Positions 3,477 to 55,231 of a DNA stretch of 64,000 bases are shown here, piece by piece (position 1 is the first letter of the stretch; each line of letters begins with the position of its first letter). The notes below the pieces were generated by a model that ran no database searches, was not told the DNA's origin, and saw nothing but the letters and a program-made list of their open reading frames with translations. The translations under genes and the position numbers were made by a program. This stretch comes from Macrostomum lignano (taxonomy: Eukaryota). The DNA lies in assembly GCA_002269645.1 (NCBI GenBank), contig NIVC01000247.1, positions 62,001 to 126,000 of the forward strand. Reading direction: 5' to 3'.

Positions 3477-6400
3477 TTAATCGCATGCTCTGCTTGGATC
3501 GAGGGAGATCTTGCGAGTTGGGTGTCCAGTAATTTCACCCACCACATGAAAATATTGGTCGCCATCCCAGTAAGGTTTCTTCACCATGCGCTTGTTAACT
3601 CGAACCATGATGCTCATCAAGTCTTCTGTCTGGTAGTACTTGTCAATTAGTTGACACACTGTTTGAATGAAGCATGATCCGTTTTGTTCATCTCTAAACG
3701 CAACCTGACCGCGGGGGATGGCGTAAAAAATCAGAAAGTCACTGTTAGAAGGATAGACAACTGAAGTTCCCTCGAATCGACCACCTGCATTGTCGATTGT
3801 TTCCCTTGTCATCAACAATTCGTCTTTTTCGAGGCCACGGCAGGCCTGGATAAAGAAAATTTTTGGCTTGCCAGCCAGACTGCTGCATAATTTCGGCTGA
3901 AACAGGTTTTTGCAAATGGTACAGCGTTGCAATGAGTTCTTTTCAGTGTTTAAATCAAATTTTTAAAAAATCTGATTTGTTCCTCATTACCAGTCCTTAA
4001 CTGTAATCAAGGAACAATCACTTCTAGCTCTGTAGCTAGGCAACGCAGTAAGTCAACTGAAGGTATTTAATTACCTTTAATCCGGAGGTGTAGATCACTT
4101 CTTTGAGTCCTTGTAGATCTCGTCACAGATCTGTCGATCAGGCCTTTTGTCCGACTTGGCTTTGTAGTCCTGGTCCGAGTTTCTTCTTTGTCTTGTGCCG
4201 GCCGGCGTCTGTAGTTTGGACCAATGGGAAGCTTCCAATTACAATGGGGATCCCTGCGCCAAACTGCGGTATAATATAAGCCTACTCCTTCTAGCAGTGC
4301 CTCTTTGCACTCTAGGAATAGCTCCGGAGACCACTGATAGTCTTCTAAGATCTATCAGGGGCAGTCCTTCTGGAGACTGCAACCAGTGGAGTCTAAACAG
4401 ACTCAAGAGTCTCAACAGACTCAGCTAGACTCAAGTCACACTAGACTTGAGCGAGACGTCTCAACCAACAGGCGCAAATGAGTAAGGCTTACCGTAAGAA
4501 CTCGACCGAGTCTCGAGTTGCTTCAAAAGTCTGCTGCAGCTTCCTCTTCGGAGCTTTCTCTCTCAGAGAAGTGTTGGCTCCGGGTCCGTTCCGGAACACT
4601 TGCATTTATAGGCAAACGAACCTCTCTCGAGGTCGTCCATCACTTTTTTTGTAAATTTCAAAGGGTCACGATTCGGTGGCTGTCAAGCATAACAGGTTAG
4701 AAAGTAGCGCAACTAGTCTACTGTAAACGCGAATGATTGGTTACCGTATCTGGTGTTTTTTTGTCGCATTTGATTGGTTCATCCGGTGCAGACCGGGTGC
4801 AAGCCAGATGATGAATCGCAGACAGGGTTTGTTTTGACAAAAGTAGGTCACACGTGACCAATGATGAATGGCAGATGGGGTTTAACTTGACAATTGTAGG
4901 TCACGCATGATTGATGGGTTGCCAAGAATAACATGTTCGACTTTCCTCTCTTCTGATTGGTTGACTAAAATTACGCATGTGATTCAGTACTTATTTTTAT
5001 ACTTGTTACTTGCTATACTACTGAATAAAACTAATAAGTAGTACGTTAACAATTTGTATGACTTTTCTTGGGAGGTATAGCACTCTACAAATAACCTGAA
5101 ACTTTCTCGTGAGATAGATAATATTGCAGGGCTTTCCATCGCTACCGACGATGCAGTCTTCGCGACCGTGAGTCATGAGGAAGCAGACAAGAGTGCCATG
5201 GCGTTCCAGTTCTTTCTAATTTCTTACACAATCTAAGAAGTTTTCGATCTCATCTGCAGTCAGGTCCTCGGGTACGTCAATGATGAATCCCAGTTTGCCG
5301 AAGAGCTCACTGACTCGTTCCACGTCAAATTGGGAGCCTTTACGCTCCCCCTCGCTGCTGGATTCGAACTTGCTGATGTTAATGATAACGCAGAATCCTT
5401 GAGGATTTCTCACCGGATAAAATTCATCGCTGCGACTGCAATACAATTGAAATTAAGGGCTCAGGTAGATAGCTTAGAAAACCTGTAAAAAGCAGTGCGA
5501 CAATTTGTGCAGATTTGTCAAATATTTTCACTTATAAAACCGTCTCATTGCTTGGCATTTTAATAATTTCGGTAGGTAAGTTTTGAAAAAAAAAATTGCA
5601 GTGTTTTATAAAAGCTTTCGAAATTGTAGATATTCAGGCACAAACCTCGAATTTGAGCTGCAATCACTCTCGACAGCAGAGTGTTGATCAACTGCTTGAA
5701 GCGACTGTGGGGTGCACTGAGAAGCTTGGCGCATGTAGGCGGCAGGCGGACTTCTATATTCGTAGCTGTAGCTGGCACCAGATTCACCACTCCCAGTCTG
5801 ATACTGTGGTCTGGTAGTCCAGGCATCGTTTTCACGAAAGCTGAAATTTAGGGACAAGAGACGTATTAACCTGAAATACCATTAATGGACGACCTAATGT
5901 TGAATTATGACCGGGAAGTTTCATTTTCACTTATTGACTTGGTGTTTTGAAATTGCAAAAAAATGACATGGAATAAATTCTGATATACTTTTTTCGGTCT
6001 GTTAATCGTCTAATCGCTATTCTTCAGAAGTAATTTAAAAGTCACATAAAATATTTCAGATTATGATTATCGAGGGATATTGCAGTACATTTTTACGTTT
6101 TCTGCAAAAGGTATTGAAACTAAACATTACGGGACGAACCTCTCAGTAGATAAACTGTCTGTAGTACCGACTTGACCTCTTCTTGTCTGGTACGGTAATT
6201 CAGTCCACCAGTCCTCATCATGATATCTAAAAAATTTAAGAAAGCAGTAAAATTTCAGATAGCTAATTAAAAGAATTTATATATCTGATAATTTATCAAT
6301 AGTTAACAAAATAATTTGGTATAATTTGAAGCTCACCCACACAGAAGCTCAGCCATCTTGTGGCTTCGTTGCTCAGTTGCTAAATCTATAGCGCAGTTTT

Positions 6401-6484
6401 GCCTTTCCGGTTCTTCAGGCTCCAATTGGAACCTGCGTAAAGCAGAATCCAGCAAACTGATGCTGCGGCATGCTGCTGGGTACA
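3477..6484 (-). pseudogene. 5'-truncated ankyrin-caspase paralog with a nonsense codon in the p20 exon
   Basis: Exons homologous to 14347-16230: p10 exon 3477-3896 (KPKIFFIQACRG), p20 exon 5096-~5436 (RKGSQFD, MTHG), linker exons, and a partial ankyrin exon at 6337-6484. TGG>TAG at 5216-5218 (Trp in the paralog) lies upstream of the catalytic His. Homology stops at ~6484 and the ankyrin 5' part is absent. Confidence 0.88.
3960..5085. mobile_element. Unclassified LTR/promoter-like insertion in the p20-p10 intron of the caspase paralog
   Basis: The intron is 1199 nt here (3897-5095) versus 77 nt in the paralog (14767-14843). The extra DNA has a minus-strand TATAAA (~4607), several CCAAT boxes (4730-4970) and splice-like sites. 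No clear TSD was found. Confidence 0.4.
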
Positions 6485-6608
6485 AAACGGCGCCAACCCT
6501 TCGTTCATAGCGACGCGTCGGCCGTTCAGGGATTAGCGGAATGGGCGCTCGCGAATTCCCGCTGTGTCCCCCCGGTACAGCCCTGCAGCTAAGTCAAGTA
6601 AGTCAAGG
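6485..6608 (+). mobile_element. Probable 3' tail of a 5'-truncated non-LTR retrotransposon
   Basis: A short reading frame (...AVQGLAEWALANSRCVPPVQPCS*) ends in TAA followed directly by an AAGTC/AAGT repeat tail. It abuts the break in the caspase paralog, and the same 31 nt recur at 18478-18508. Confidence 0.5.
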
Positions 6609-13239: not shown

Positions 13240-14346
13240 ATCTATGAATAATTCTTTCTCCTTTAAGAACATTTAAAGCCGCGGCTTGCTACTTCTGTTA
13301 TGCTAATTCTAAAAAGAGAAGTTCACTCGCACTAGAGAATTGTAGATAATAAATTTTACTCTGTTTGCGGCAGACAGTATTATTTTTCTTGCTACTAAAT
13401 ATAGCCATTACCATATAGTTCAACTAGAATTGTTTCTTAGAAACGCTTAGTTGCTAAATGTGACATTGGAGTGGGAGCAAATCTATATAATTTGTACGTG
13501 CGTACGTAATTAGTGGAGATTTGAAAAACAAATAATTTTCAATTTGAATAAACAATCGCAGAAAAAAACTTGAGCAATCCGTACAGTACATAAAGATAAA
13601 CCGAACGACAGGAACTCGAGGCTCCTAGTAATTGAAATTGTAGGTACTTTGAAAGGCATGCAGAAATGGGAGGTTTCGAGAGCAAAAATAGGGGTAAACA
13701 TATAAAAAGGAGGGCTAGCTAAATATCCAAATAGCTTCAAGTCGTAGGCTTAGTAGGCTTTCAAGTCAATGAGCATCTATGCGTGCGGCTCGCGATAATA
13801 TATGTATATGTGGCTTTGTTTGCCCTCAAAAATAGCAAACTGAGAGATAGGTATTTTCTAACCGTAATATGTGGTAAATTTGAAAGATATATGTCCTTGA
13901 TTTATTGATTTTGTCACTCTTGTCAAAAGCCTCTAGACTCTCTAGATCGTATTGCCCTACAGTTAGACCAGTGTGTTTGATGAAACTCCTCAAAGCTCAA
14001 ACCCCCGCATCATTTGCCCTCGCATCCTCTCTAGCAGCAGCGGGAAAGGTCTATAGTAAAAAGCCCACTAATAATATATAAGTCTGTCACTGGCTGCAGT
14101 AGCTAAATAAAAGGGTTAATTTTTTAGGAGTAAATAGGCACCGCTTTTCAGCTACGATTCTCGTAGAGGTATATGGATAGTTAGTTATACGTATAGTCAT
14201 AGTTACCGTAAAACACGATGTTAGACGCTAGCATGCCTTAGAAACTCTTTGGGTAAAGCTGGAAAAAGAACAATAATCAGCTGAAACTCAGAGACATCAC
14301 TCAATTGTTATAGTTTACGTGTTTATGGTGAGCAGGTTCGTCTTTA

Positions 14347-17300
14347 TTAATCGCATGCTCTGCTTGGATCGAGGGAGATCTTGCGAGTTGGGTGCCCAGT
14401 AATTTCACCCACCACAAGAACATACTGGTCGCCATCCCTGTAAGGTTTCTTCGCCATGCGCTTGTTAACTCGAACCATGATGCTCATCAAGTCTTCTATC
14501 TTGTAGTACTTTTCAATTAGTTCGCACACTGTTTGAATGAAGTATGAGCCGGTGTTTTCATCTCTAAACGCAACCTGACCGCGGGGAGTGGCGTAAAAAA
14601 TCAGAAAGTCACTGTTAGAAGGATATAGAACCGAAGTTCCCTCGAATCGACCACCTGCATTGTCGATTGTTTCTCTTTTCACCAACAATTCGTCTTTTTC
14701 GAGGCCACGGCAGGCCTGGACAAAGAAAATTTTTGGCTTGCCAGCCAGACTGCTGCACAATTTCGGCTGAAACAGGTTTTTGCAAATGATACAGCGTTGC
14801 AACGAGTTCTTTAGAGTGTTTGGATCAAGTGCAAATAAATCACCTGAAACTTTTTTGTGAGATCGAAAATCTTGCAGGGCTTCCCATCGCTACCGACGAT
14901 GCAGTCTTCGCGACCGTGAGTCATGAGGAAGCAGACAAAAGCGCCATGGCGTTCCAGTTCTTTCCAATTTCTTACACAATCTAAGTAGTTTTCGATCTCA
15001 TCAGCAGTCAGATCCTTCTTGCATACGTCAATGATAAATCCCAGTTTGCTGAAGAGCTCACTGACTCGTTCCACGTCAAACTGCGAGCCTTTACGCTCCC
15101 CCTCGCTGCTGGATTCGAACTTGCTGATGTTAATGATAACGCAGAATCCTTGAGGATTTCTCACCGGATAAAATTCATCGCTGCGACTGCAATACAATTG
15201 AAATTAAGGGCTCAGGTAGATAGCTTAGAAAACCTGTAAAAAGCAGTGCGACAATTTGTGCAGATTTGTCAAATATTTTCACTTATAAAACCGTCTCATT
15301 GCTTGGCATTTTAATAATTTCGGTAGGTAAGTTTTGAAAAAAAAATTGCAGTGTTTTATAAAAGCTTTCGAAATTGTAGATATTCAGGCACAAACCTCGA
15401 ATTTGAGCTGCAATCACTCTCGACAGCAGAGTGTTGATCAACTGCTTGAAGCGACTGTGGGGTGCACTGAGAAGCTTGGCGCATGTAGGCGGCAGGCGGA
15501 CTTCTATATTCGTAGCTGTAGCTGGCACCAGATTCACCACTCCCAGTCTGATACTGTGGTCTGGTAGTCCAGGCATCGTTTTCACGAAAGCTGGAATTTA
15601 GGGACAAGAGACGTATTAACCTGAAATACCATTAATGGACGACCTAATGTTGAATTATGACCGGGAAGTTTCATTTTCACTTATTGACTTGGTGTTTTGA
15701 AATTGCAAAAAAATGACATGGAATAAATTCTGATATACTTTTTTCGGTCTGTTAATCGTCTAATCGCTATTCTTCAGAAGTAATTTAAAAGTCACATAAA
15801 ATATTTCAGATTATGATTATCGAGGGATATTGCAGTGCATTTTTACGTTTTCTGCAAAAGGTATTGAAACTAAACATTACGGGACGAACCTCTCGGTAGA
15901 TAAACTGTCTGTAGTACCGACTTGACCTCTTCTTGTCTGGTACGGTAATTCAGTCCACCAGTCCATATCATGAAATCTAAAAAATTCAAGAAAATAGTAA
16001 AATTTCAAATAGCTAATTAAAAGAATTTATATATCTGATAATTTATCGATAGTTAAAAAATAAATTGGTACAACATGAAACTCACCTACGCAGAAGCTCA
16101 GCCATCTTGTGGCTTCCTTGCTCAGTTGCTAAATCTAGCGCAGTTTTGCCTTCCCGGTTCTTCAGGCTCCAATCGGAACCTGCGTAAAGCAGAATCCAGC
16201 AAACTAATGCTGCGGCATCTTCCTGGGTGCAACAAGCTGCTTGCATAAGGGGAGTCCATTCAAAGCTCATGCAGACATTAGCCTTGGCTCCAGCGGTCAG
16301 CAGTGCGGCGGCTGCCGCAGAATTGCCCTTGTAGGCTGCAATATGCAAAACACTCATCCCGTGTGTATTTGCACACGTGGGATCACACACTTGCAGAAGC
16401 TTCTTCAGAAACGTTTCTTGATTCAGATTCGTAGTATCTGGATTGCTGCGCTGCTGAGGCTGAGCTACATGCATAAACATCAGCGAGAATGTGTTACCCT
16501 GGCTGTTAGGCAAGTCACAGTTAAAGCGGTTCACCTTCTGAACCAACGCTGAGTAGTTTTCATCCTCAAGCAGCTTTTTCATATCCTTTAGCCAGCTTTC
16601 CTGAAAAGACAAATACATTTTTTGGCATCATTGTACACCGCGAACGAATAGGGCACACAGATGACTCACTCACCACAAAATCCGGACCAGTGATGGAGCC
16701 ATTGCAATCGAAAACCAGCCGCATTTCTCTGTGACCGCGAATATAAAAAGGTGGCCTACTATACAATTACGTTAATTAGAAGAAGAACATATTTTTTTAA
16801 CATCTTAGCTAACACGAGCCGTAGATGTACACACAGAGTTACCCCGAAATAAATATTGTACGAAAAAACAAATTGACTGATGATAAGTACAAATGCTCAC
16901 GTACAGCTCAATGTAGCTGGCCAGTCCTGAATGGTCGTTGAGTCTGGCCAGGTCCGATGCTGTCCGACCGCGGTGGTCCTTCAGTCCGAGTAGCCGCGAC
17001 CTCTTCGAGTTTCCGTACGTTGAGCACTCGTTAAACCTGAGCTGCCTCAGCAGATGCAGCAGGTGCTTCGTGCATTTCCAGCTGCCAGCCCGTGCGGCTT
17101 CCATCAGCGGAGTGGCGCCATTCTCATTTTGCAGCCACTTCGCTTCAAATGGAATCAGCGCAAGCACTCGCAGGTTGTCTCGCCGGGCTGCCAAGTGTGC
17201 GGCCGTGTTGCCCGACCGGTCAGTGTCTTTAGGATCTGCGCCCAGCTTATATAAGAGCCAGATGCACTTTTCAGTCTGCACTGAAGTCTCATGAGCGTCG

Positions 17301-17705
17301 GCCACCAGCATGAGGACGGTCCGTTCGGCTGCATCGGTCTTGGTCATGAGCTCTGTAGTTGCCTCGAGCAGTAACTGGCTGAAGTCAGCTTTGATTACCA
17401 GCTGGGAGAGTGCCTTTACAGCATATGTAGACTCCCTGAACCGGCGGAAGAAGAAGAGCTTCTCAGCAACCCCAAAAGATAATAGGCCAGTGAGTCTCCA
17501 TAGCTGAAATTTTAGCATTGCTATCTCGCATTATCACAAAATCATGTCACGTTTCATAAGTATTACAATAAAAAGGGTCGCAAATAAAGTTCTCACAATG
17601 AGATTCGAACTTTATTCGATCTTTAAAAGATTATTACTCGTAGTAACTCACCTCACTGTCGGGGAAGGTTGGGATCGGAGCTGGTTTGGAGAACCAACTG
17701 CCCAT
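14347..17705 (-). CDS. Predicted N-myristoylated ankyrin-repeat caspase (~740-765 aa, 7-8 coding exons)
   Basis: Frame-consistent GT-AG exons: 17705-17652 (MGSWFSKPAPIPTFPDSE), 17503-16905/16901 (ankyrin), optional 16755-16674, 16600-16086 (ankyrin), 15976-15890, 15590-15396 (S/Q-rich linker), 15186-14844 (p20: RKGSQFD, FLMTHG) and 14766-14347 (KPKIFFVQACRG, AFRDENTGSYFIQ). The spliced junction gives the canonical F-x4-C-x2-L-x-GKPK. Confidence 0.88.
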
Positions 17706-18281
17706 TTAGTAGCCACAAGGCTCACTGAAAGCAGACGTACACAGCAGGTAGCAGTGAATTGGTAGGACAGAATGCAACTGTGACAGCCTGAGCCCAATTT
17801 TTTACAAGACTTTCCAGATTTTATAGAGACAAACAATAGCTTAGGTAGGTCTTCGGTGTGATTCAAGTGGCTAAAAATAGCTGACAGTAACAGAAAGTAC
17901 GGAAAGAGTCTGCAGTCAATATATGTTGACTGAGCTACTATTAGTACCCATTTGTGCCTACCAAAGAAACACCTTCATGGAGCGAATGGTAGCCCCTGCC
18001 GACGTAGGCAAACTGCTGACATCACTTAAAGCTCCGTCGCTTGTTCGACAGCGCCTTGGTAGAAGGACTAAATCTGAATAAATTAGTCAGACAAAAGTAT
18101 AAAATTAATTTTCAAGCATTGCAGCGTGCTGGGATGGAATCACAATAATTTTCATACGTTGAGCTATCTTGTGCTCATATAGAACGCCTATATGACTGGA
18201 GTTTACGAAGCCACGTGGTATGTATGTAGAAGCCACGAGCCAATGTTCTATGTAGAATCTAACTTCTAATGGAGCATGATA

Positions 18282-18770
18282 CGAAGGCAACTGCAGCTCG
18301 GTTTGCTCCGGAAACCCGATGCAGAAATTTGGCGGCACATTCCGCAACTCCATATTCTTCCTGAGCTACCCAGGTACCCAGGACACCCAAAATACCTACT
18401 GGCGAGTGAAGCAGTCCAGCCCTCCCGTGACATCCGGTACCCCTTCCGTCTGGCCGGTTGTTGCAAAGTCGGCAGTTCAGCCCTGCAGCTAAGTCAAGTA
18501 AGTCAAGGACTCTGTTCGTGCGTGGCTGAGCTCGAGCGTTTCGGTGACCGACTGGCTCAGTTGATGAGCTGAGCATGGACTCAAGCAAACTGAATTATGA
18601 CCTGTCTTAAAACGCTATCCAAACAGCCACATCCATCTGAAGCAAATAAAAGTTCGGAACAGAGAAGCCTCTTCCTGGCATAACTAACCTTGAGTAATCT
18701 TGTTTATTATTGTTATCCAGACCCTGGCAACGAAGCATTCGTCTGTCAATATTTTAGATTAACGGTAAGC
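18282..18770 (+). pseudogene. 5'-truncated, intron-less WSC-PAN paralog fragment with an internal deletion
   Basis: EGNCSSVCSGNPMQKFGGTFRNSIFFLSYP runs in frame into NTYWRVKQSSPPVTSG. Most of the PAN domain is replaced by a 31-nt filler; the 3' flank is homologous to that of the full copies. Confidence 0.82.
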
Positions 18771-22510: not shown

Positions 22511-23242
22511 ATACTCAGCCCAGCAGCGGCTCTGTCCGTTCTGTTCTGCGCTGCCCTCCTGCTCACTTGCGTGACCGGCAGGTTTGTCCGCTTCTCCTAC
22601 CTGGGCTGCTACAAAGACTATGGATCACCCAGAGACTTAAATGGGCTCAGTGGAGTCAGCAAGATCGGCGGGTTCAGAGTTGGTGGCAATGGGCGAGTCA
22701 GAAGCACGAAAATGTCACACGAACTGTGCAGCGGAATCTGCTCAATAGGCAGCTTCCTCTACTTCGGTGTGCAGTACGGCAAAGAGTGCTACTGCGGCAA
22801 CTCGTACGGATCCCAAGGCTTGGTGAGCGAAGACAACTGCGGCTCTTCTTGCTATGGAAACCGAAAGCAGAAATGTGGCGACACGTACTGGAACTCTGTG
22901 TTCTCTCTGAGCTACCCAGGTACTTTTTGTCTTTTGCTGTACTGGGCCGTCAGTAAATATGGAAGCATTTTACCAATTTTGTACTTTCGTTCAACTTCAG
23001 TTTCCAACAGCAACACCTACACGGTAGTGAAGCAGTCCAGCCCTCCCGTGACATCCGGTGCCACTTCCGTCTGGCCTGTCGCTGCCCAGTCCGTCGAGGA
23101 CTGCCTGCTCCGGTGCAGCGCCAGAGCCGACTGCCGGGCCGCCGTTTTCTCCGGACAGGAGCTCGCCTGCCACCTGCTGGAGTTCGTGTACCCGCCTGGC
23201 CACCTGAGCGGGCCCGAGTGGACTCTGTTCGTGCGTGGCTGA
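22511..23242 (+). CDS. Secreted WSC + PAN/Apple domain protein, copy 1 (start codon appears mutated to ATA)
   Basis: Signal peptide, then WSC (YLGCY...MSHELCSGIC...YFGVQYGKECYCGN...C...C.GN..QKCG), intron 22920-23000, and a PAN-like exon (SVEDCLLRCSARADCRAAVF...CHL). The position of the paralog ATG reads ATA at 22511-22513, with no upstream in-frame ATG before the TGA at 22463. Confidence 0.8.
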   Translation: MLSPAAALSVLFCAALLLTCVTGRFVRFSYLGCYKDYGSPRDLNGLSGVSKIGGFRVGGNGRVRSTKMSHELCSGICSIGSFLYFGVQYGKECYCGNSYGSQGLVSEDNCGSSCYGNRKQKCGDTYWNSVFSLSYPGTFCLLLYWAVSKYGSILPILYFRSTSVSNSNTYTVVKQSSPPVTSGATSVWPVAAQSVEDCLLRCSARADCRAAVFSGQELACHLLEFVYPPGHLSGPEWTLFVRG

Positions 23243-23932
23243 GCTCGAGCGGTGCGGTGACCGACTGGCTCAGTTGATCGGCTGAGCATGGACTCAAGCA
23301 AACTGAATTAAGACCTGTCATGAAGCGCTATTCACACAGCCACATCCACTTAAGGCAAAATAAAAGTTCAAACAGAAAAGCCTCTCCCTAGCACAACTAA
23401 CTTTGAGTAATCTTCTTATTTATCCTTGTTCTCCAGACCGTGGCAAAGAATAATTTGTCGGCCAATATTTTAGGATGACATTGTAAATCTTTATCAGCGA
23501 AACTGAAAGTCGCAAAGCAAATAATCAGGCTCCTATTCCACAGCTGCGTCAGTTCAGGCACCGTGTGTCGAACTTTTTGATTGTAAAGCGGATGTTTGCA
23601 TTCGGCTTTATTTCGTTTGAATTAAGACAGACATACATTAAAATGCATAACAGGCAGGATGGGTGTCGTGTTTGACAGAAGCATACAATTGAATAAATAC
23701 TATAGAGACTTGGATGACGGCCTCCACATTTTTCTAAGCTTTGGGGTGACTGTCTCCTGTATTTCAGCAAGTTAGCCAGACAAAGCGGGCTTTATTTCTA
23801 ACCTGATTTCATATTTGAATGTGTGCTCATGTTGGGCGTCGCTACTCGTTTCTTTACTCACCCAGGCCCTTGGATGCAGAGGCAAATCTTGCAAAAACCG
23901 TTCCATGTCGTAAAGATTTCTTGTTTTTGTTA

Positions 23933-24910
23933 CCAAACTGTATCCGCCCCTCCCAAACTGGATCCGCCTCTCCCAAACTGGATCCGCCTCTTCCAAACTG
24001 GATCCGCCTCTTCCAAACTGGATCCGCCTCTCCCAAACTGGATCCGCCTCTCCCAAACTGGATCCGCCCCTCCCAAACTGGATCCGCCTCTCCCAAACTG
24101 GATCCGCCTCTCCCAAACTGGATCCGCCCCTCCCAAACTGGATCCGCCTCTCCCAAACTGGATCCGCCTCTTCCAAACTGGATCCGCCTCTTCCAAACTG
24201 GATCCGCCTCTCCCAAACTGGATCCGCCTCTCCCAAACTGGATCCGCCCCTCCCAAACTGGATCCGCCTCTCCCAAACTGGATCCGCCTCTCCCAAACTG
24301 GATCCGCCTCTCCCAAACTGGATCCGCCTCTCCCAAACTGGATCCGCCTCTTCCAAACTGGATCCGCCTCTTCCAAACTGGATCCGCCTCTCCCAAACTG
24401 GATCCGCCTCTCCCAAACTGGATCCGCCTCTTCCAAACTGGATCCGCCTCTCCCAAACTGGATCCGCCTCTCCCAAACTGGATCCGCCTCTCCCAAACTG
24501 GATCCGCCTCTCCCAAACTGGATCCGCCTCTCCCAAACTGGATCCGCCTCTCCCAAACTGGATCCGCCTCTCCCAAACTGGATCCGCCTCTCCCAAACTG
24601 GATCCGCCTCTTCCAAACTGGATCCGCCTCTCCCAAACTGGATCCGCCTCTCCCAAACTGGATCCGCCTCTTCCAAACTGGATCCGCCTCTTCCAAACTG
24701 GATCCGCCTCTCCCAAACTGGATCCGCCTCTCCCAAACTGGATCCGCCTCTCCCAAACTGGATCCGCCTCTCCCAAACTGGATCCGCCTCTCCCAAACTG
24801 GATCCGCCTCTCCCAAACTGGATCCGCCTCTCCCAAACTGGATCCGCCTCTTCCAAACTGGATCCGCCTCTCCCAAACTGGATCCGCCTCTCCCAAACTG
24901 GATCCGCCCC
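23933..24910. repeat. 20-bp minisatellite (TGGATCCGCCTCTCCCAAAC)
   Basis: About 48 highly homogeneous units; the long ORFs over it are artefacts. Confidence 0.98.
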
Positions 24911-25964
24911 CAAGCAAGTACAAAAAAATACTTGCCTTTGCTACCTCAGTCCCGCTATACAATGAAAACTGTGTTTCAAGCGCCTCACTTTGTATTGTAG
25001 TTATTCTTAACCACCAAGAAAAAAACGGTGGAAACATTTTGTCCAGTCTTAACTATTTGATCAGAAATTTTCAGAATTTATTAGGTGTCTTTTGTCTTTT
25101 GACAGAAGTGAAGACAAATTCTGATTCGTCCTGCTGTAGAGGCCTGTACTCTGGAACGTTGCTCAAGAACTCATCTGATTGGTCCATAGAGAAATGCCCC
25201 TTAAATCACATAAATCTAAAAAATTAGATGCAGAATGTGAGCCATTGTTTTGCTATAGAGCGCCCACCCCATTTTTCCGGCTCCGTACGTCAGCCGGCTT
25301 TCTCTCTCTAACTCTCGCCCCCTTATCTGTACTCGTAGTAAGCAAAGTGTACATTTACGACCACCACCCCACGCAATGCATTCCTATATACTAAAAATGA
25401 AATGTCTGTGTGTATGTGTGAGATAGATTTCAGAAAAAACGGCTCAACCGATTTTCTTCAAACTTGCACCATTCGATCAGAAATTTTCCTGGGACGGTAC
25501 ATGCATCTTGGCTAAGAAATTGCTCAATGTTAAAGGCATTAAATATTCGAAAAACATGCTTTTTTTACAAAGGTCAAGCAGAACTTCGACCTGAAATGCA
25601 TTGTAAGAATGCTAGAGAAAAAACTGACTGGCTGAATTTCAATTCTGATAAAGATTGCATCACAACAAGTTGAAAACAGTGTCAAAGAAATGCACACCCG
25701 ACTTGATTGAAATTGCGTAACCATATTGCTAACTTAAATTGGGACTGATACTGGCTGACTGAGAAATTGATTATGTCATAACTTTTTACTCTAACCGATT
25801 TGCTATAAGAATTGAATTATAAGGGACACAATTCACGATCTCCAATTAAAAAGAAATAGCCCAGATGCGAACAGACTGGAATGCTAATGTAGCGACCTGG
25901 GTTCGAATCTTAGTAGTGCAAAAAAATTTTTTATTAAGACACTTTAAAAACACACAAAACTGCT

Positions 25965-31693: not shown

Positions 31694-32429
31694 ATGTTCC
31701 GCCCAGCAGCGGCTCTGTCCGATCTGTTCTGTGCTGCCCTCCTGCTCACTTGCGTCACCGGCAGGTTTGTCCACTTCGAATACCTGGGCTGCTATAATGA
31801 CCCCGGGTCACCTAGAGACTTGAACGGACTCACTGGAGTCAGAAAGTTCGGCGGGTTCAGGTTTGATTGTTACGGGGCAGTCAGAAGCACGGAGATGTCG
31901 CACGAGCTGTGCAGCAGCATCTGCTCGGCGGGCGAATTCGCCTACTTCGGTGTGCAGTACGGCAGGGAGTGCTACTGCGGCAACTCGAACGGATCCCATG
32001 GCTTGGTGAGCGAAGGCATCTGCGGCGCGGCTTGTTCCGGAAACCGGATGCAGAAATGTGGCGGCATATACCGCAACTCTGTGTTCTCATTGAGCTACTC
32101 AGGTACGAGCGTACTTTTGTAACTTCATTGCTCAGTAGCGGCAGTCATTACGGAATTATGAGACCACGCACTTTCGTTCAACTTCAGTTTCCGACAGCAA
32201 CACCTACACGGTAGTGAAGCAGTCCAGCCCTCCCGTGACATCCGGTGCCACTTCCGTCTGGCCTGTCGCTGCCCAGTCCGTCGAGGACTGCCTGCTCCGG
32301 TGCAGCGCCAGAGCCGACTGCCGGGCCGCCGTTTTCTCCGGACAGGAGCTCGCCTGCCACCTGCTGGAGTTCGTGTACCCGCCTGGCCACCTGAGCGGGC
32401 CCGAGTGGACTCTGTTCGTGCGTGGCTGA
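31694..32429 (+). CDS. Secreted WSC + PAN/Apple domain protein, copy 2 (intact)
   Basis: ATG at 31694 (MFRPAAALSDLFCAALLLTCVTG signal peptide); WSC exon to 32102, phase-1 intron 32103-32187, PAN exon 32188-32429. Confidence 0.9.
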
Positions 32430-33124
32430 GCTCGAGCGGTGCGGTGACCGACTGGCTCAGCTGATGAGCTGAGCATGCACTCAATCGAACTGTAATGTTC
32501 TGGTTTCAAACGCAATCCACACAGTCCCGAGCAAATATAAATTAAAACAGAAAAACCTCTCCCTGGCATATCTAACCTTGATTATTCTTCGTGTTTATCA
32601 TTGTTCTCCAGACCCTGGCAAAGAGGCATTTGTTGAGAAGTATTTTAAGTCGACACGGTAAATCTTTGTCAGCAAAGCTGAAAGTCGCAAAGCAAATAAT
32701 CAGGCTCCTATTTCACAGCTGCAACAGTTGCAGCACCGTGTGCCGAACTCATTGATTTAAAAGCAAATGTTTTTCAAGCTAGTTTAAATTATGGCCAGAC
32801 AAAATGCATAAACAACAGGATGGGGGGGGGTGAGTGGTTGACAGAAACATACACTTGGATAGATATGAGAGACTTTCCCTTAATGGCGGCCTCCACTTGT
32901 TCTCAGCTTTGGGGTGGCTGTCATCTGTTAGTTTAACACGCCAGTAGCCAGACAAGCAGGTTTCTTCTCTACCCTCATTTTTATATTTTAACGTGTGCTC
33001 ATGCAGGGCGTCGCTACTCGTTTCTTTACTCACCCAAGCAATTGGATGGACAGGCAAATTTTGCAAAAACTGATTCATGTCGTCAAGATTTCTTGATTTT
33101 TTGTCACCAACAGAATCCGCCAAA

Positions 33125-34620
33125 CAGGATCCCCCGAAATTGGATCTATCGAAACTGGGTATCCCGAAACTGGATCTATCGAAACTGGATCCCGCTAAAC
33201 TGGATCCCTCCAAACTGGATCCCCCCGAAACTTCCCCAAACTGGATCCCACCGAAACTGGATCCCCCCGAAACTGGATCCCCTCAAACTGGATCTCCTCA
33301 AACTGGATCCCCTCAAACTGGATCTCCTCAAACTGGATCCCCTCAAACTGGATCTCCTCAAACTGGATCTCCTCAAACTGGATCTCCTCAAACTGGATCC
33401 CCTCAAATCGATCCCCTCAAACTGGATCCCCTCAAATGGATCCCCTCAAACTGGATCTCCTCAAACTGGATCCCGTTAAACTGGATCCCCTCAAACTGGA
33501 TCGTCTCAAACTGGATCTCCTCAAACTGGATCCCCTCAAATGGATCCCTCAAACTGGATCTCCTCAAACTGGATCCCGCTAAACTGGATCCCCTCAAACT
33601 GGATCGTCTCAAACTGGATCTCCTCAAACTGGATCCTCTCAAACTGGATCTCCTCAAACTGGATCCTCTCAAACTGGATCTCCCCAAACTGGATCCTCTC
33701 AAACTGGATCTCCTCAAACTGGATCCTCTCAAACTGGATCTCCTCAAACTGGATCCTCTCAAACTGGATCTCCTCAAACTGGATCCTCTCAAACTGGATC
33801 TCCTCAAACTGGATCCTCTCAAATGGATCCCCTCAAACTGGATCCCCTCAAACTGGATCTCCTCAAACTGGATCCCCTCAAACTGGATCTCCTCAAACTG
33901 GATCTCCTCAAACTGGATCTCCTCAAACTGGATCCCCTCAAATCGATCCCCTCAAACTGGATCCCCTCAAATGGATCCCCTCAAACTGGATCTCCTCAAA
34001 CTGGATCCCGTTAAACTGGATCCCCTCAAACTGGATCGTCTCAAACTGGATCTCCTCAAACTGGATCCCCTCAAATGGATCCCCTCAAACTGGATCTCCT
34101 CAAACTGGATCCCGCTAAACTGGATCCCCTCAAACTGGATCGTCTCAAACTGGATCTCCTCAAACTGGATCCTCTCAAACTGGATCTCCTCAAACTGGAT
34201 CCTCTCAAACTGGATCTCCCCAAACTGGATCCTCTCAAACTGGATCTCCTCAAACTGGATCCTCTCAAACTGGATCTCCTCAAACTGGATCCTCTCAAAC
34301 TGGATCTCCTCAAACTGGATCCTCTCAAACTGGATCTCCTCAAACTGGATCCTCTCAAATGGATCCCCTCAAACTGGATCCCCTCAAACTGGATCTCCTC
34401 AAACTGGATCCCCCCGAAACTGGATCCCCCGAAACTGTATCCGCCCTTCCTAAACTGGTTCAGCCCCAGAAAAACAATCCCGCCCCTCACAAACTGGATC
34501 CGCCCCAAAACTTTATCCGCCACCCCTAGCTGGATCCGCCATTCCCCCCAAAACTGGATCCACTCTCAAACTGGAGGGTCCGCCCTCAAACCAAGCTGGT
34601 TCCACCCCATTCCCCTCCAA
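33125..34620. repeat. 14/15-bp minisatellite (TGGATCCCCTCAAAC / TGGATCTCCTCAAAC)
   Basis: About 95 units with higher-order duplicated blocks; shares the AAACTGGATCC core with the 20-bp array. Confidence 0.97.
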
Positions 34621-34839
34621 ACTCCGCTCCGTCCCACATCTGGATAGGTGAATCATCAATCAGCAGTTTATGACGATAGAGACCAATTTTTTTGTTTGGT
34701 AGAATTTATTGCATATTTTGCCTAATCCGTAATGTCAAAGTCAGTGCCAAAAATGGAAGCGGCTGATTTTTCAAGTTTATTATAAATAATCGTCCTTTAA
34801 CGGTTCTCAGATGTTTCTACTTATCCAAGTGCGCAAAAA

Positions 34840-37755
34840 TCAGTAAGATTTTGCGTCCGCCATCAGCCGCACGAACTTCTCCTTGACTTCGGCAATCACG
34901 TCGTCATAGCCGCTGCTCAAAGCCACCAGCTGCTTGTGGACGAACTCCAAATGGCGAGGATCGCTGCTGAATTCAGCCAGAGCCTTCAGCTCCACCAAGT
35001 CTGCGCCCTGTTGCAGTTCCAGGAACCAGTCCTCGGCGCTGACCTCGTCGCTGGGGAGCAGCTCAAAGCAGAGACTCTTGAAGGCTGCATCAAAGTTAAT
35101 GTAGAAAAACTCAATATGATTTTCTGTTCCGGGAGGAAAAATCTTCTGAGTGAGATTCGGTAGATACGGCAGCTGAAGTCCTTCATCTATGCGGAAAAAG
35201 AATCGCCAAGCTGAGTCGCTGTTCAACAGTTGATGAAGCACCGATGACTTCTCGAACTGAATGCTGCGATTCACTTTTAGCGACTGGGACTTCTGTCTTA
35301 GCAAAGTTGTTCGAGCGGCTTCGAGGTCACCGGCCTTGAGTTGGAGCATGGCTCGGAGGCACTCTCGTGCTGTGCGGGCGCAGTCTGGCAGGCTGTCAAG
35401 AAGCCTCCAGTTGCACTCGTCAGAATCAGCTTCATCGTCAGGCCTCAGCCTGAGTAAAAGCTGAGCAACGCAGTCGTAAAGCTGGTGGTACTCGCCAGCA
35501 AACTGCTCCACAGTGCGCCTGCGTGTCACCCTCTGCAGCGGTATCAGGTTGAACGGATCGAAATTAAAGTCCGCAGTGTCCAGTGTTTTTAATTGGGACT
35601 GAAAGTTGAGCAGATGGTCAGGCAGGCTTTGCGTCACGGTTTTCAGGCAACTTAGCACTTCTTCTTTCGGAGAGGAGTTCTTCTTGAAATACAGCGGAGC
35701 ATCCGGGTAGAAGAAGTGTCTCATGCAGACCCGAGGATCGGATTCCTGGCTGAGGCAGCTTATCAGCAAGTTCAGCGCTTGCTGCACCAGCTCAGTAAAC
35801 TTCTCAGGCTGCCACATGTCGATTGGAGTTCGATGAACCATCAAGAAAATCAGAGTTTTTGCATGGTAAGACTTCAAGCCCTTCACCTGCTTGCTAACGA
35901 CATTCTTTAAAAGATGCTTCACAGTGACGAACAACTGGCCCTCTACTGTGGTGAGACTTCTCATAAACAGGCGCTCGAGGAAAGTCGTGCTGATGCGCAT
36001 CTCGAGCCCGGATTTTCCTGGGCTGGCTGCTCGGATGAGGTGGCACGGATTGCCGGCGCGAAGCTCGTTCAATAAGCTCTCAACCAGGCTCTGCGGCAGG
36101 TGACCTTGACAGCCTGGCTGCAGAACTGGCACATCAGGGTAGCAGCAGCACTGGACCGCAAATACGTAGTCAGTTGCCGGTCTCCGCCGTGACGGCAAGC
36201 AGGTTTCTGCGGTCACAGATGCTGGAATTCGAACAGCAGGAATGATTTGTTGTGGTTCCATGTTACTACTAACTGACTGAGCAACCAAATAGATCCAAGA
36301 ACTTACACGATACGCTGCAAGTCACGTGACCATTGACGAATTCTCCCACCATTTTGTCCGCGACTGACTCCGGAGGGCACTGGCAGAAGCCAGCGATGTG
36401 GCAGCAGTCGGGAGTGATGCGGGTAAAGTCTAAGTCAGAGTCGAAGCCTGTTCGCCCGTTCAAAACTGCGAGATTGTTTCCCCAGCCGTCGCCATAGCTA
36501 CCGGTGAGATGGTGGGGAAGACCGAGGCATTTGGTGCAGATGTCCTCCAATGCGCAAGCGATCTCAGCTTGAAACCGCGCTCTCGGGGCTGTGAACCCTG
36601 CAGCCGTGAGACGATGGCTGAGCTGGTCGCAGTCTCGGGACTGAAGCTCGACTGTAGATTCTTCCGACTCTCCGCGAAGAAGCGATCGAATTCTGAGCAC
36701 AGTCGGATGGTCTCGATAAGAACTCAGACGCTTTAAGCAGGAAGTCATAATTTCAGATCGCTGTGCAGAGTGGACTGACATAGCGCTGAGCAGCAGCCAG
36801 ACTACCTGCTCATTCAGGTACGAGCAGGCGAGTAGCAGCGCTGTTTCTCGGCTGTCATTCACAGCAAAGAGGTCGGCCTTGGCCTCAATAAGCAGCCGAA
36901 CAACCTGGATGTGGCCGTTCTTGGCAGCTGCGTGCAGCGCTCGAGACCCTGCGGCGCATGCCAGATTGACATCCGCATTGGCGTCAATGAGAGCCGAAGC
37001 AACCCCAGCAAAGCCGCACTTCGAGGCTACGTAGAGCGGCGTCTCCCCGGCAGTGTTCGGGACGTTTGGATCGGCGTTGGCGCGAAGCAGGCGCTTCAGA
37101 ACCTCGACGTGATTCTTCAAGGCGGCGTGGCACAGCGGCGTAAAGCCCCTTTTGTTTGGGATGGCCAGGTCAGCGCTGGCACCAATCAGCAGCTCGATGG
37201 AGCCAATCTGGCCCGTATAGGTGGCCGTATTGAGTGGCGTGAGCCCGCTGAACCACATCACGTGATCAACATTGCCGCCGGCCCGCATCAGCGTCTTGAC
37301 AACGTCGGTGAAGCCGGTCTCGGCAGCGATGAACAGCGGAACCGCTCCTAGCGCGTCTTCCGCATCGACTTCGGCACCTGCCCGAAGCAGCCGCTGGACT
37401 ATCGGCAGGTGTCCGTACTCCGATGCCATGTACAGAGCGGTGGCTCCTGTGCTGTCTCTGAGCTCCACAGCGGCTTGAAATTCAAGCAGGAGTTCAACAG
37501 CCTCCACGTGACCGTTCCAGCTGGCTTTCATCAGCGGAGTGACTCCCGCAGAGTTGCCGAGGTCCAGACTGGCTCCAGCTCCGGCTAGCAGCCTCACGAT
37601 GGAGCTAAGACCGCGCTCGGCAGCTAGGTAGAGCGGCGAGCTGCCATCGCCTGTGCGAGAGTCCAGTGGGACGAGGGAGGCCACGAGAGAGCGGACAGCA
37701 GCTCGTTGCCTTCGCAAACTGCTGAGTGCAGCTGCGAGCCTTCTGATGCTTCCAT
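34840..37755 (-). CDS. Ankyrin-repeat (x10) cGAS/Mab-21-like nucleotidyltransferase (cGLR) with a long helical C-terminal extension, ~960 aa; 1-nt frameshift at ~37702
   Basis: ATG at 37755 (MEASEGSQLHSAVCEGN) followed by ten ankyrin repeats. NTase core GSYGDGW...DSDLDF with a third acidic residue in TDYVFAV; Mab-21 C-lobe MRISTTFLERLF, LKSYHAKT, MRHFF. A 34-nt GT-AG intron (36273-36306) joins the two ORFs in frame. Confidence 0.87.
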
Positions 37756-38137
37756 GATGATGGCTTGCTAAGATTCCAGCCACTCTGAGTGAGCCCAATA
37801 GAATTCAGAGTGGTACCGCATTATTGTACTCAGTTCCATCCAAGTAGTGTACTCCATTGGACAGTACAGTCTTGTACGGCAGCACTGCACCCGTACAGTG
37901 GATGCTATTAATAGAAAAAAGAAATGGCTGTCTATTCAGTAGCAATGGCGAGGATAATTCCAGTCGATTTTTAGTTTATAGCTGACATCCGCATGGTTTA
38001 GCTTTATATACGCTAGTATTTTTTTCTAAATTGTGTCAATCCCGACCTATTCCCCAGTTGGTATTTTTGGCCTTTCAGGCAGAGCTGAAGTGTAAATTTT
38101 TTATATAAAAGCTGTGCGCTAAAAATTGAAAATTAAA

Positions 38138-38675
<538 letters not shown>

Positions 38676-39187
38676 AGAATCTCTCAATAAGCAATACTTT
38701 TTACTACGTTGCATGATAATAATTATAATAATAATAATAGATTACACCTGAACTAATCGGCAAATGTGCAACCGACAGCTCAGCCGCAGCTATTACGGTC
38801 TATAAAACCCTAAAATAAACTAGATCCCGATAAAGTATTAGTATATGGATTTGAGAATACGTCTTACTTGCCTCTTTCTTCTATTTTCTTTATTGTTGTA
38901 CGCACAGCGAGTACACGCTTTCCAGCTTCTTTTCCCTGCCTTACTCTAAAATACTCCAAATGGCCCAACTCCTCTTTCTCACTCTCTCACTCCGCCTCTC
39001 TGGCACCGTTCTCTCTGCTATTTTTTTTACTGTTCAATAGTGTGCAGACACTCACTCCCTTTTCCGCTGTGCATCCCCCACTGCTCACGCAACTCTCCTG
39101 TATTGTTTGTTCTCTCTTCTCTGTACACGTATTTGCAATATGACACATTAACAACGACGGTTGATATTAATTATTTACTATATTAAT

Positions 39188-50631: not shown

Positions 50632-51667
50632 CACAGAACATAGACAGAATGCCCGATCGGCTGTCGCGGGATGTTTAGAAATTAATATGCAAACAAACTA
50701 CTTTTGTGGTGAAGCGGAGCAGTAGTTATGAAAATTCGATATGCATATATATATATTTATAATATATGTAGACTCTGCGTATGATTCTATAAACTTATAT
50801 ATTGCTTCAGAATTTAAAATTAACAGGTTTGGCAGTGCCCAAATAGGAATAAAACCGTAGACGTTGTCCCCAATCATTTATTTGAAACAAAAAACATATT
50901 TGAAACATTTTCCATCAAAACACTGCACATCGTCCTCAGTGCGACCTTCTCTCGGCCTTCTCTCCTTCGCAAGTGGAGAAACTCTTACTCTCGGACGCGA
51001 GCGTCGGTAAGGTTCTGCTATTTCTTTGTACAGCTGGAGCATCGGGTAAGCCGTGGGCATCAGTCTGACCCCAGGCTCATGTCTCTGGTCAGGACACACG
51101 TACATGCTGTCGGGAAAATGGTGGCTGCACACGACAGCGTTCTTCCACCTCGCTTCGTTTTTCTTGCCCAAGAGGTCTGCTCGGAAGATGCGCCGAGCCC
51201 AATCTTCACACCTACAGTAGTTAGGTTTCAGTGAATGACTATGGGGCAATAGCAGGAAAGTCACGCATGTACATGAACATACCTTTCTCGGTTTGCTGGG
51301 AATCGATGAAATCTCGTTTGTGCAGGACATTTGTTTGCGTAATTCTGGCAGCCATAAGCAGCGCATTGCCTTCTTGATGCTGTCATGTTACAGTTGTCTC
51401 TGTTTAATGCCTTCGTTGCTACCAATCACTGCCTTATTCATGTCAGTAGCAGCAGCCGCTGCCACAGAATATACTGTATATTCTGTGGCAGCGGCTGCTG
51501 CTACTCGCAGTCTCAGTCGTCTATGGCAGAACCTTTCCAAGCCGCATACGCGTAAGTATAAGTGGCTACTATCTTTCTTCACCACAAAAGTAGCTAAATA
51601 TGCAAATACTTTTTGTAACAGATTTTTCTGCGAGAGGGCTGATCGGCCATTCTGTCTATATTCTGTG
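50632..51667 (-). mobile_element. 1036-bp non-autonomous P-element-like transposon
   Basis: ~29-bp TIRs (CACAGAACATAGACAGAATGCCCGATCGG / CACAGAATATAGACAGAATGGCCGATCAG) and a perfect 8-bp TSD ACGCAGAC (50624-50631, 51668-51675). It encodes a THAP domain. Confidence 0.88.
50878..51386 (-). CDS. THAP zinc-finger-only protein (truncated transposase N-terminus)
   Basis: Exon 51386-51283, 71-nt intron, exon 51211-50878: MTASRRQCAAYGC...RFHRFP...CEDW...VCSHHF...LMPTAYP, a complete C2CH THAP signature. Confidence 0.85.
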
Positions 51668-52434
51668 ACGCAGACTGTGACCCGAGAAGCCGCACTCGCC
51701 AAAGCCGCACATAGACATGCCCCGCTTTAGGAGCCGGATGAACATAACGGCAGACAAGAGAGTCCGGCCGCGGCTGCCTAGGACAGAAAACAGGGGCTGC
51801 TGCGGTCCGTAGATTTGATTCTCGCGCAGATGAGTTGCTAGTGCGGAAGCGGGACAGATAAGCAGGCATTCAGAGGCCTGCGGCAGAAATAATTCCAGTT
51901 GCCGCTCCTTGAATTGGTTTGTCTTTGACCTGTTGAGCACCAGCCGCAGACCACCGGGGCACGCTGATAGGCAGCTCCGGGGAAGAGCGTCCGCAGCGGT
52001 GGATGGTAAGAGCTCGCCGAGCCTAAGGACTCCCCACCAGGCCACCAGCAATGCTGCCTGGAAGGCGGCCAGCAGACGGGGCGGCAGCGAATGACGTAGC
52101 TCGGTGGAGCTGCAAAGCAGGCGGAGGTGGCTGGGCTTCAGCGGCGTCGCACGCCGAGGCTGCCGGCTCAGAAGACGCCGAGCCCCGCGACACACGAGAG
52201 CCAGGCGAGCGCTGCCCTTGGTCGGGTCTGGTGACGCGGAAGCCCTATGTAGGTAAGACACCGCGCTGAGGCTTGACTGCACACTGGAGTAGGACGCCGG
52301 TCCACGTTGTAACAGGAACGAGACAAATTGGCAGACATCAGACTCGGAGGCGGCGGTCGCGGGAACTCGACGCTGCCGGCAGAATTCGTTCCAGACTTGT
52401 AAGCGGCTCGCATAGGACTTCCTGGAACTAGGCG

Positions 52435-54102: not shown

Positions 54103-54172
54103 TGAGCAGATGGAGGCAAGATAAAAGGTGACGGCGAACGGGGGTTAAAAGCAGGGCGGCTATAAAAAAGAT

Positions 54173-55231
54173 CTAGTTTTTTGCTTCCTCCACAGCGTCG
54201 CCGCCGACGCTGGCCGGACGGTGCTGGTGTGCGGGGTGCAGCCGGCCGCAGTCGCGCAGCTTGCAGACGTGACGGTATCTACAGGAGGACCGCTGGCAGC
54301 CGGCAGGGGAGTTGTAGCTTAGGCAGATGGGAGCTTGCGACTGGTTGGATGCTGGTCTGCTTAGGGTGACTTTTAAGTTTCTTGGTGCGTTAAGGTGTCG
54401 GTGGTACAGCTGTGGAGGCTCGCAGCCCCATCGATGCGAATCCGAGTCGGCGATCAACTTTCTGTAATCCTCATCGAATTCCCACACGACACTTGGGCTG
54501 TAGTTAGCGTCTAAGAGCTCGCCGATCTTCTGTGAGTACTCCAGATAGCCTTTTAGTTCGTCAACATTGACAGATCTATCCTCATTAATGTGAATCAGCG
54601 ACCCATCATCAACTAGTCGAAGCAAAATCTTAGAGTTCCCTGCAATCCACTGGCCGACAGAGATTTTCCCCAAGCTGGGTGGCTGCTTCTTAAAGACCAG
54701 GTTCCCGTTCTCCATGCAGGCTGTGAGGCTCTCATTAGGTTGATTTGAACTGGGCTTGACAAAATCGCGAATCAGATAAGCCCTGCTAGGCTTTTTGTCA
54801 CACTGGCTTCTGCCGGGATCTGTAAGAGCGCCGCCTAACAAAAACGCCTCATGCAAGCCAGCATTTTCTCCCCGCTCACCTTGTTGTGGAGGTTCCTGAG
54901 ACCGGTGGTTCTGCGACTGATTGAGCTCGCTTTGCAGTTGTGCGCGGCGCCGAGTCAGAGCTTCAATCTCCAGCTGCTCGACCTCCTTCCTCAGAGCCGC
55001 CAGGTCGCTCGCCGCGCTCCCTGAAGCTCCGTGTCCACCCGTCGAATGTCCAGCGTCGATGGTGTCTGAGTTGAGGCTTGCGTCGTGACTTTTTGCTGCA
55101 GCTGGATACTCAGACATAGCACGCAGGTGTCTGTGTAGACGCTCATAGAGTTGTTGTTTACGACCAGCTTGTGAGAGGCCTCGCTGAGCTAGCTCTTGTT
55201 TGAGCTGTTTAGTTGTGCGTGCACTTTCCAT
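54173..55231 (-). CDS. Ngaro gag-like ORF1 with N-terminal SAP-like motif and C-terminal CCCH zinc finger (352 aa)
   Basis: TTKQLKQELAQRGLSQAGRKQQLYERL; a coiled-coil; CLSYNSPAGCQRSSCRYRHVC...CGRLHPAHQH. Confidence 0.82.
   Translation of the reverse strand: MESARTTKQLKQELAQRGLSQAGRKQQLYERLHRHLRAMSEYPAAAKSHDASLNSDTIDAGHSTGGHGASGSAASDLAALRKEVEQLEIEALTRRRAQLQSELNQSQNHRSQEPPQQGERGENAGLHEAFLLGGALTDPGRSQCDKKPSRAYLIRDFVKPSSNQPNESLTACMENGNLVFKKQPPSLGKISVGQWIAGNSKILLRLVDDGSLIHINEDRSVNVDELKGYLEYSQKIGELLDANYSPSVVWEFDEDYRKLIADSDSHRWGCEPPQLYHRHLNAPRNLKVTLSRPASNQSQAPICLSYNSPAGCQRSSCRYRHVCKLRDCGRLHPAHQHRPASVGGDAVEEAKN

Follow-up and report, generated by a model that had tools for sequence, protein, structure and literature searches.

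A Macrostomum lignano gene predicted to encode an ankyrin-repeat caspase with an N-myristoylation-type start and no death-fold prodomain

A gene for a predicted caspase that combines an N-myristoylation-type start with an ankyrin-repeat prodomain was characterized on the minus strand of contig NIVC01000247.1 of the free-living flatworm Macrostomum lignano. The stretch analysed, hereafter the window, comprises 64,000 nucleotides (nt; contig positions 62,001 to 126,000), and the gene occupies window positions 17705-14347. It is a eukaryotic, intron-bearing gene with eight exons, GT-AG splice sites throughout and an open frame of 755 codons. Its product opens with an M-G-S-x-x-S start; next come some 40 disordered residues, a solenoid of ankyrin repeats in two lobes (residues ~42-415) and a linker that is again disordered (420-503), and a caspase of p20/p10 fold stands last. 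Judged from the sequence and the comparisons described below, we consider it reasonably probable that this is an intact and expressed gene for a catalytically competent, predicted Asp-specific caspase with a long prodomain that lacks a death fold, for which a putative activation scheme can be drawn.

The two ankyrin blocks and the caspase motifs RKGSQFD, THG, QACRG and AFRD named in the original prediction, which had been made by reading the sequence, were recovered by Pfam and by a residue-for-residue alignment with caspase-3. Pfam reported two ankyrin blocks and Peptidase_C14 (PF00656, MEROPS C14A; score 147.7 bits, the cut-off being 21.4; E = 5.8e-43), and the top sequence matches in the PDB were caspase-3 and caspase-7 (E = 5e-33). 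The alignment with caspase-3 assigned His592 (MTHG) and Cys635 (QACRG) to the catalytic dyad and Arg533 (RKGSQFD), Gln633 and Arg684 (AFRD) to the Asp-binding S1 pocket, indicating that the predicted dyad and pocket are complete in the window caspase. All exons lie on the minus strand. Exon 7 (343 nt, 14844-15186) carries the junction at SRSD505 and the greater part of the p20 (large) subunit, including Arg533 (15095-15093) and His592 (14918-14916), and exon 8 (420 nt, 14347-14766) carries QACRG, the inter-subunit loop with LEKD641 and ETID651, and the small (p10) subunit, with Cys635 at 14712-14710, Arg684 at 14565-14563 and the stop codon at 14349-14347. An AATAAA polyadenylation signal, read from the sequence at 14343-14348 on the same strand, overlaps the stop codon. 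An AlphaFold model built with 39 aligned relatives had a mean pLDDT of 78.8, with both folded parts at about 90 or higher: residues 504-755 formed a confident caspase fold with a floppy, low-confidence loop at 640-666, residues ~42-415 formed a confident helical-repeat solenoid containing a beta-hairpin, and residues 1-41 and 420-503 were disordered. Comparison of the model by Foldseek with caspase-3, -7 and -8 and CED-3 gave target-normalized TM scores of 0.78-0.90 among the 50 matches listed, the best being 0.85-0.90.

No CARD, DED or DD was found in the product; at E ≤ 0.1 Pfam returned only Ank and Peptidase_C14, and AlphaFold modelled the prodomain as the ankyrin solenoid plus disordered segments. 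Pfam and AlphaFold therefore bear out the proposal that a myristoylation-type start, ankyrin repeats and a complete caspase stand in one gene without a death-fold prodomain. The coding sequence was rebuilt from the frames of exon-sized open reading frames (ORFs) together with splice signals, and a first version with seven exons was then corrected by comparison with relatives. Exon 2 (599 nt, 16905-17503, donor GTACGT) encodes a disordered tail at the N-terminus together with the first lobe of the ankyrin solenoid, and exon 4 (515 nt, 16086-16600) encodes the second lobe. Between them lies exon 3 (55 nt, 16674-16728; EMRLVFDCNGSITGPDFV), a beta-hairpin connector that joins the two lobes; it is kept in every paralogue as EMRLVxD..G.I.GL, and the AlphaFold strands fall at residues 222-231. 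The sequence features proposed originally are all present at their stated positions, but this 55-nt exon had been overlooked; with its inclusion the exon 2 donor shifts from 16901 to 16905 and the frame is kept. A bacterial-type set of ORFs was considered and rejected, the listed ORFs being merely exon-sized pieces of the gene.

The linker had been described as Ser/Gln-rich; it is indeed rich in both residues, but its composition over about 85 residues is properly Ser/Thr/Gln (S 18%, T 9%, Q 9%). Its first stretch is encoded by exon 5 (87 nt, 15890-15976), which can be skipped without breaking the frame, and exon 6 (195 nt, 15396-15590) encodes a Ser/Thr/Gln-rich disordered part with a candidate cleavage site, VESD496. 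Among the database isoforms, P0001 and P0004 lack exon 5, P0002 has it, and P0003 skips exons 5 and 6 together. Because both exons are in phase 2 at both ends and are skipped in some database isoforms, the length of the linker is probably varied by splicing.

The nearest proteins are all from M. lignano and are 83-92% identical to the window product, or 91-97% when splice differences are set aside; their database names are either hypothetical protein or 'ANK_REP_REGION/CASPASE_P20 domain-containing'. One of them, P0002, is encoded by a homeologous locus (L001) whose DNA is 93-95% identical in exons and introns alike, and the more distant Ank-caspase paralogues P0005-P0008 are 36-47% identical and have the same layout. 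The ankyrin module of the window protein, about 370 residues long, is at ~45-55% identity also fused to protein kinases (P0009, P0011, P0012, P0014 and others), to a kinase plus a caspase (P0050) and to SH3 (P0032), and the kinase domain of these paralogues is nearest to MAP3K5/ASK1, MAP3K2 and PAK (STE/ASK1-like). All carriers of this family-specific module that were checked are from M. lignano, and tandem arrays occur, with at least four copies within 18.7 kb of locus L002. These comparisons show the window gene to be one member of a family that duplicates in tandem and is confined to Macrostomum.

The GenBank annotation of assembly Mlig_3_7 was built from RNA-seq and transcriptome assemblies and not ab initio (PMC5730564). 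The proposed layout as a single transcript is supported by these RNA-based models, since those of the homeologue (93-95% identical) and of paralogues (38-47%) join the parts; in each of P0002, P0006 and P0008 the MGS exon is connected to the exons for the ankyrin repeats and to those for the caspase within one product. The possibility that the ankyrin and caspase portions are separate adjoining genes was rejected, as the stretch separating them contains neither a stop nor a start codon, the phases match and the RNA-based paralogue models join both.

A small first exon encoding MGSWFSK was found at 17652-17705, where it had been predicted. This exon (54 nt, phase 0, donor GTGAGT) encodes MGSWFSKPAPIPTFPDSE and constitutes a predicted N-myristoylation signal, with Gly2 at 17702-17700, Ser6 at 17690-17688 and Lys7 at 17687-17685. 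It fits PROSITE pattern PS00008 (G-{EDRKHPFYW}-x(2)-[STAGCN]-{P}) through Gly2, Ser at position 6 and the absence of Pro at position 7. The ATG (17705-17703) is directly preceded by an in-frame TAA and has a strong context, with A at -3 and G at +4. A TATAAAA box is present on the minus strand at 17819-17825, about 120 nt upstream of the start codon, and the ATG at 17705 is the sole ATG from this box to exon 1; TATA-like boxes were also read by eye 80-100 nt upstream of the MGS starts in the paralogues at loci L002 and L003. When 500-nt upstream stretches were simulated with a Markov model, about 0.1% of them held an ATG that carried the motif, kept its frame open and was followed by a consensus donor in phase.

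Three Ank-caspase lineages share a common layout, in which a tiny phase-0 first coding exon is followed by an intron of 150-520 nt and a large ankyrin exon. The first exon reads MGSWFSKPAPIPTFQPTFLDRE in P0002 at L001 (donor gtaagt), MGSAASSLNNT in P0008 at L002 (donor gtgagc) and MGSGSSVNSQ in P0006 at L003 (donor gtaaga), and an unannotated MGSAASK... with an in-phase donor lies at L002:14699, about 270 nt upstream of a fourth copy. The first exon of the L001 homeologue has an in-frame 12-nt insertion and retains its ATG and donor, but comparison with L001 says little about exon 1 because introns (94-98% identical) are as conserved as exons (93-100%) and the two copies are too young. Among three caspase paralogue lineages that are only 38-47% identical overall, M-G-S-x-x-S is retained and the rest of exon 1 cannot be aligned. 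Retention of the motif alongside divergence of the remainder of the exon is what selection on the lipidation signal itself would be expected to produce. The kinase-bearing paralogues have a homologous first exon (MAERGPIPIPYDK, MAEQVPTSFPGEK and MAQRGKSPFPDER, compared with ...KPAPIPTFPDSE in the window gene) that starts with Met-Ala and not Met-Gly, and Gly2 is likewise missing in P0050, in the M. lignano protein P0176 and in the ankyrin caspases of parasitic flatworms (see below). This pattern of conservation, with Met-Gly in caspase members and Met-Ala in kinase members, supports predicted N-myristoylation.

Several observations weigh against an intact gene whose product is myristoylated, and some of them concern the N-terminus. 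The product contains no evident second membrane signal: residues 1-10 include no Cys and residues 1-18 have a net charge of -1, neither a palmitoylatable Cys nor a polybasic patch was found near the N-terminus, and neither a transmembrane segment (maximum Kyte-Doolittle mean over 19 residues, 1.27) nor a strong amphipathic helix (low hydrophobic moment) was detected. Myristate by itself provides only weak and reversible membrane binding. As no second signal was found, anchoring, if present, would be weak or switch-like, and location at the membrane with activation there is offered as a testable but unproven hypothesis, not as a conclusion. The aromatic residues W4 and F5 are, in addition, unusual beside a myristoylated Gly. 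Furthermore, exon 2 has two in-frame acceptors, giving a start at 17503 (ttcag/CTATGG) or at 17458 (gagaag/CTCTTC). The acceptor at 17503 looks ancestral because the exon then opens with LWRLT, which can be aligned with the LQELT that opens exon 2 in the distant paralogues. In the L001 homeologue the ancestral acceptor now yields TGA, and the transcript-based model takes the downstream site. Finally, trans-splicing is common in M. lignano, about 39% of its genes receiving a spliced leader (SL; PMC5730564), and an SL at exon 2 would remove the MGS start.

The lack of a second membrane signal, the aromatic residues and the frequency of trans-splicing, together with an ATG at 17518 that is in frame with exon 2 and would give MLKFQLWRL..., speak for a real ankyrin caspase that is cytosolic, either because the MGS exon is untranslated (through a start in intron 1 or an SL at the exon 2 acceptor) or because Gly2 is no substrate of N-myristoyltransferase. 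We regard this as possible but doubtful: the MGS codon is the first ATG downstream of the TATA box and stands in good context, a small first exon with M-G-S-x-x-S is found in the RNA-based models of three paralogue lineages, and the in-frame ATG of intron 1 is not kept in the L002 paralogue. As a separate observation, the 45 nt at 17459-17503, a stretch that is spliced out in L001, are ~77% identical to L001, compared with ~97% for the adjoining intron; relaxed selection, positive selection and a gene-conversion boundary are all possibilities for this divergence.

Other observations of the same tendency concern the standing of the window copy itself, which is known from DNA alone, the RNA-based models belonging to its homeologue and paralogues. 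A pseudogene copy of the same Ank-caspase lies 8 kb away on the minus strand (3477-6485); it lacks everything before the middle of exon 4, shows 92-96% identity and has a 2-bp insertion in its exon 4 remnant, a TGG to TAG change in exon 7 and an insertion of ~1.1 kb in the last intron. Paralogue P0005 reads QAGRG in place of QACRG and has lost the catalytic Cys, and the ratio of nonsynonymous to synonymous substitution (dN/dS) against L001 is near 1 in the linker; with the pseudogene, these features show birth-and-death evolution of the family. That the window copy is a redundant, decaying duplicate without a function of its own in a fast-turnover family would fit the 5'-truncated and frameshifted neighbour, the loss of the ancestral exon 2 start in L001, exons that are no better conserved than introns between the window and L001, an overall dN/dS of 0.46 and the large recent duplications of the M. 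lignano genome (PMC5730564). However, in the window copy no stop interrupts the frame over its eight exons and none of the splice sites is damaged, no catalytic or pocket residue is missing, the promoter and poly(A) signals are preserved, and dN/dS is as low as 0.28 for the caspase (0.42 for the ankyrin repeats), which makes decay a very unlikely explanation.

Caspases with ankyrin prodomains are already in the literature as a class. Horkan et al. (2024) described 'ANK caspases' as monophyletic, as the sister group of DED caspases and as occurring in parasitic flatworms only, apart from a single annelid example, and linked them to parasitism (PMC11463336); they credit Lee et al. (2014) with first finding these proteins in Schistosoma. 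According to the same study, flatworms have lost components of the extrinsic pathway and the activator of ANK caspases is not known. The premise of the original prediction that long-prodomain animal caspases carry CARD or DED is outdated in view of these published flatworm and annelid proteins, and a lobster and two gastropods likewise have proteins in the databases that combine Ank and caspase. Myristoylation does not occur in the text of PMC11463336, and full-text searches of the literature returned nothing relevant on a naturally myristoylated caspase.

A word-indexed homology search with the window caspase domain alone gave 14 matches and not one flatworm ANK caspase; the parasite ANK caspases were retrieved through P0176 (PAA94436.1), an Ank-plus-caspase protein of M. 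lignano that has homeologues and carries the database name 'Caspase-8'. A neighbour-joining tree of 27 catalytic domains (100 bootstraps), which is distance-based and small, united the ANK caspases of Schistosoma, Trichobilharzia and Taenia with P0176 at 69% support, all of them falling within a caspase-8/9/10 group that had 100% support. The window gene fell outside this group in a distinct Macrostomum-only clade (91%) that also contains other Ank-caspases, the Ank-kinase-caspase P0050, a Ras/Roc-caspase (P0064) and a prodomain-less caspase (P0052). The catalytic domain of the window protein is 30% identical to that of the S. mansoni protein P0214, and BLASTP of the 415-residue prodomain against P0214 gave no specific similarity, the best match (E = 0.06) involving generic repeat motifs only. 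Within the limits of a small, distance-based tree, the window gene lies outside the published ANK caspase clade and belongs to a second, separate ankyrin-caspase lineage that is probably independent, while P0176 is likely orthologous to the parasite ANK caspases. By these sequence-based assignments, ankyrin caspases exist in M. lignano, a free-living species, which contradicts the published statement that they are restricted to parasites. This contradiction is new, as are the separate Macrostomum lineage, the ankyrin module held in common with ASK1-like kinases and the limitation of the conserved Gly2 motif to caspase members.

A scheme can be proposed for how the window caspase would be activated. 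Gly2 would be myristoylated during translation, giving a weak or switchable attachment to a membrane or partner, and the ankyrin module would bind a partner or ligand, so that lipid and ankyrin module jointly concentrate the zymogen at the membrane or on the partner. Proximity would lead to dimerization and to self-cleavage at the candidate sites LEKD641 and ETID651 in the inter-subunit loop and VESD496 and SRSD505 at the prodomain junction. Cleavage at the junction, where an Asp is found one or two residues ahead of a conserved FYPV in four of five lineages, would detach the protease, in its active form, from a prodomain that is anchored. In this way the protein would act as an apical, sensor-linked caspase despite its executioner-like catalytic domain. 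As a caution to be set beside those above, the ankyrin partner, the cleavage sites and the mode of activation in this scheme are all putative.

The same junction sites would also suit a different role for the prodomain, in which the ankyrin module is mainly an intramolecular inhibitor that masks the caspase, much as designed ankyrin proteins do in trans, until another protease removes it. Ankyrin-repeat proteins can bind and inhibit caspases, according to work cited in PMC11463336, and in the AlphaFold model the long flexible linker would let the module fold back on the caspase. We think this unlikely, since the fusion of the module to kinases and SH3 as well fits a common upstream binding function better than caspase-specific masking.

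The window protein can be set beside several known systems. The parasite ANK caspases (Schistosoma, Trichobilharzia, Taenia) and the window protein are both flatworm proteins with ankyrin repeats ahead of p20/p10 and without CARD or DED, and both are proposed initiators whose activator is not known, but the parasite proteins begin with MQNN... or MPQT... and lack the Gly2 of the window protein. P0050 (PAA47029.1), from the same species, has a related ankyrin module and a caspase in the same Macrostomum clade; unlike the window protein, it has a kinase domain between the two, starts with MPDP... and contains no myristoylation motif. It is probably the caspase for which PMC11463336 describes a pro-domain resembling a protein kinase. 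Caspases-3/7 have the nearest catalytic sequence and are among the best structure matches, with an identical dyad, QACRG and S1 arginines and an ETID-type inter-subunit site, but their prodomain is about 25 residues long, whereas that of the window protein has about 500 residues and a lipidation motif.

Concentration of a zymogen at a membrane, followed by induced proximity, is how caspase-8 acts at the death-inducing signalling complex and how engineered, myristoylated, dimerizer-inducible caspases are switched on. Caspase-8 is recruited via DED/FADD and the myristoylated caspases are artificial; in the window caspase the anchor would be natural and the ankyrin repeats would be the recruiter. 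In Trypanosoma brucei, the metacaspase MCA4, which belongs to the caspase-like clan, is lipidated and associated with membranes, and it is a pseudopeptidase. It differs from the window caspase as a protist metacaspase of an Arg/Lys-specific type without ankyrin repeats. Zebrafish Caiap is an adaptor of inflammatory caspases with ankyrin repeats and a CARD (PMC5662874). It likewise ties an ankyrin module to caspase activation, but on a separate adaptor and via CARD, whereas in the window protein the module is on the same polypeptide and no CARD is present.

Further features were recorded elsewhere in the window. Just upstream of the caspase promoter lies a repeated segment of 250-480 nt (18282-18762), with further copies at 23026-23473, 32213-32647 and 58553-58829; two of these three further copies adjoin ORFs with WSC/PAN domains (22571-23242, plus strand; 58881-59393, minus strand). 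At 34840-37798 on the minus strand, two abutting long ORFs encode about ten ankyrin repeats (Ank_2, E = 2e-73) followed by a Mab-21 C-terminal domain (PF20266, E = 4e-8); the pair may be a gene for an ankyrin plus Mab21/cGAS-like nucleotidyltransferase, another ankyrin-plus-effector architecture. A DIRS-like retroelement at 51656-55561 (minus strand) has three ORFs, with a SAP domain (gag-like), a reverse transcriptase (RVT_1) and a tyrosine-recombinase SAM-like domain, respectively. Long simple or tandem repeat arrays at 392-1087, 38119-38716, 23772-25037 and 33077-34647 consist of (GTCT)n-type microsatellites and of minisatellites with units of ~50-60 nt, and they generate spurious long ORFs in several frames.

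Taken together, the findings correct the inference of PMC11463336 that ANK caspases are restricted to parasites and tied to parasitism, as M. lignano has both P0176 and a separate, expanded family. Caspase activation is usually explained by death-fold platforms, and this locus offers a testable clue to how ankyrin caspases are switched, namely a myristoylation signal that is kept only in the caspase members of a family whose ankyrin module is common with stress-kinase-like proteins. M. lignano is amenable to transgenesis and RNA interference. A broader and more tentative idea, which we put forward as a speculation, is that Macrostomum may use a death-fold-free form of signalling in which one lineage-specific ankyrin sensor/adaptor module is wired to a caspase, to an ASK1-like MAP3K or to a kinase plus a caspase, and in which only the caspase versions are N-myristoylated, activated by proximity at the membrane and then cut loose. 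If this were true, the window protein would be the first animal caspase with a natural lipid anchor, and the system would be functionally analogous to the death-receptor complex while consisting of other parts.

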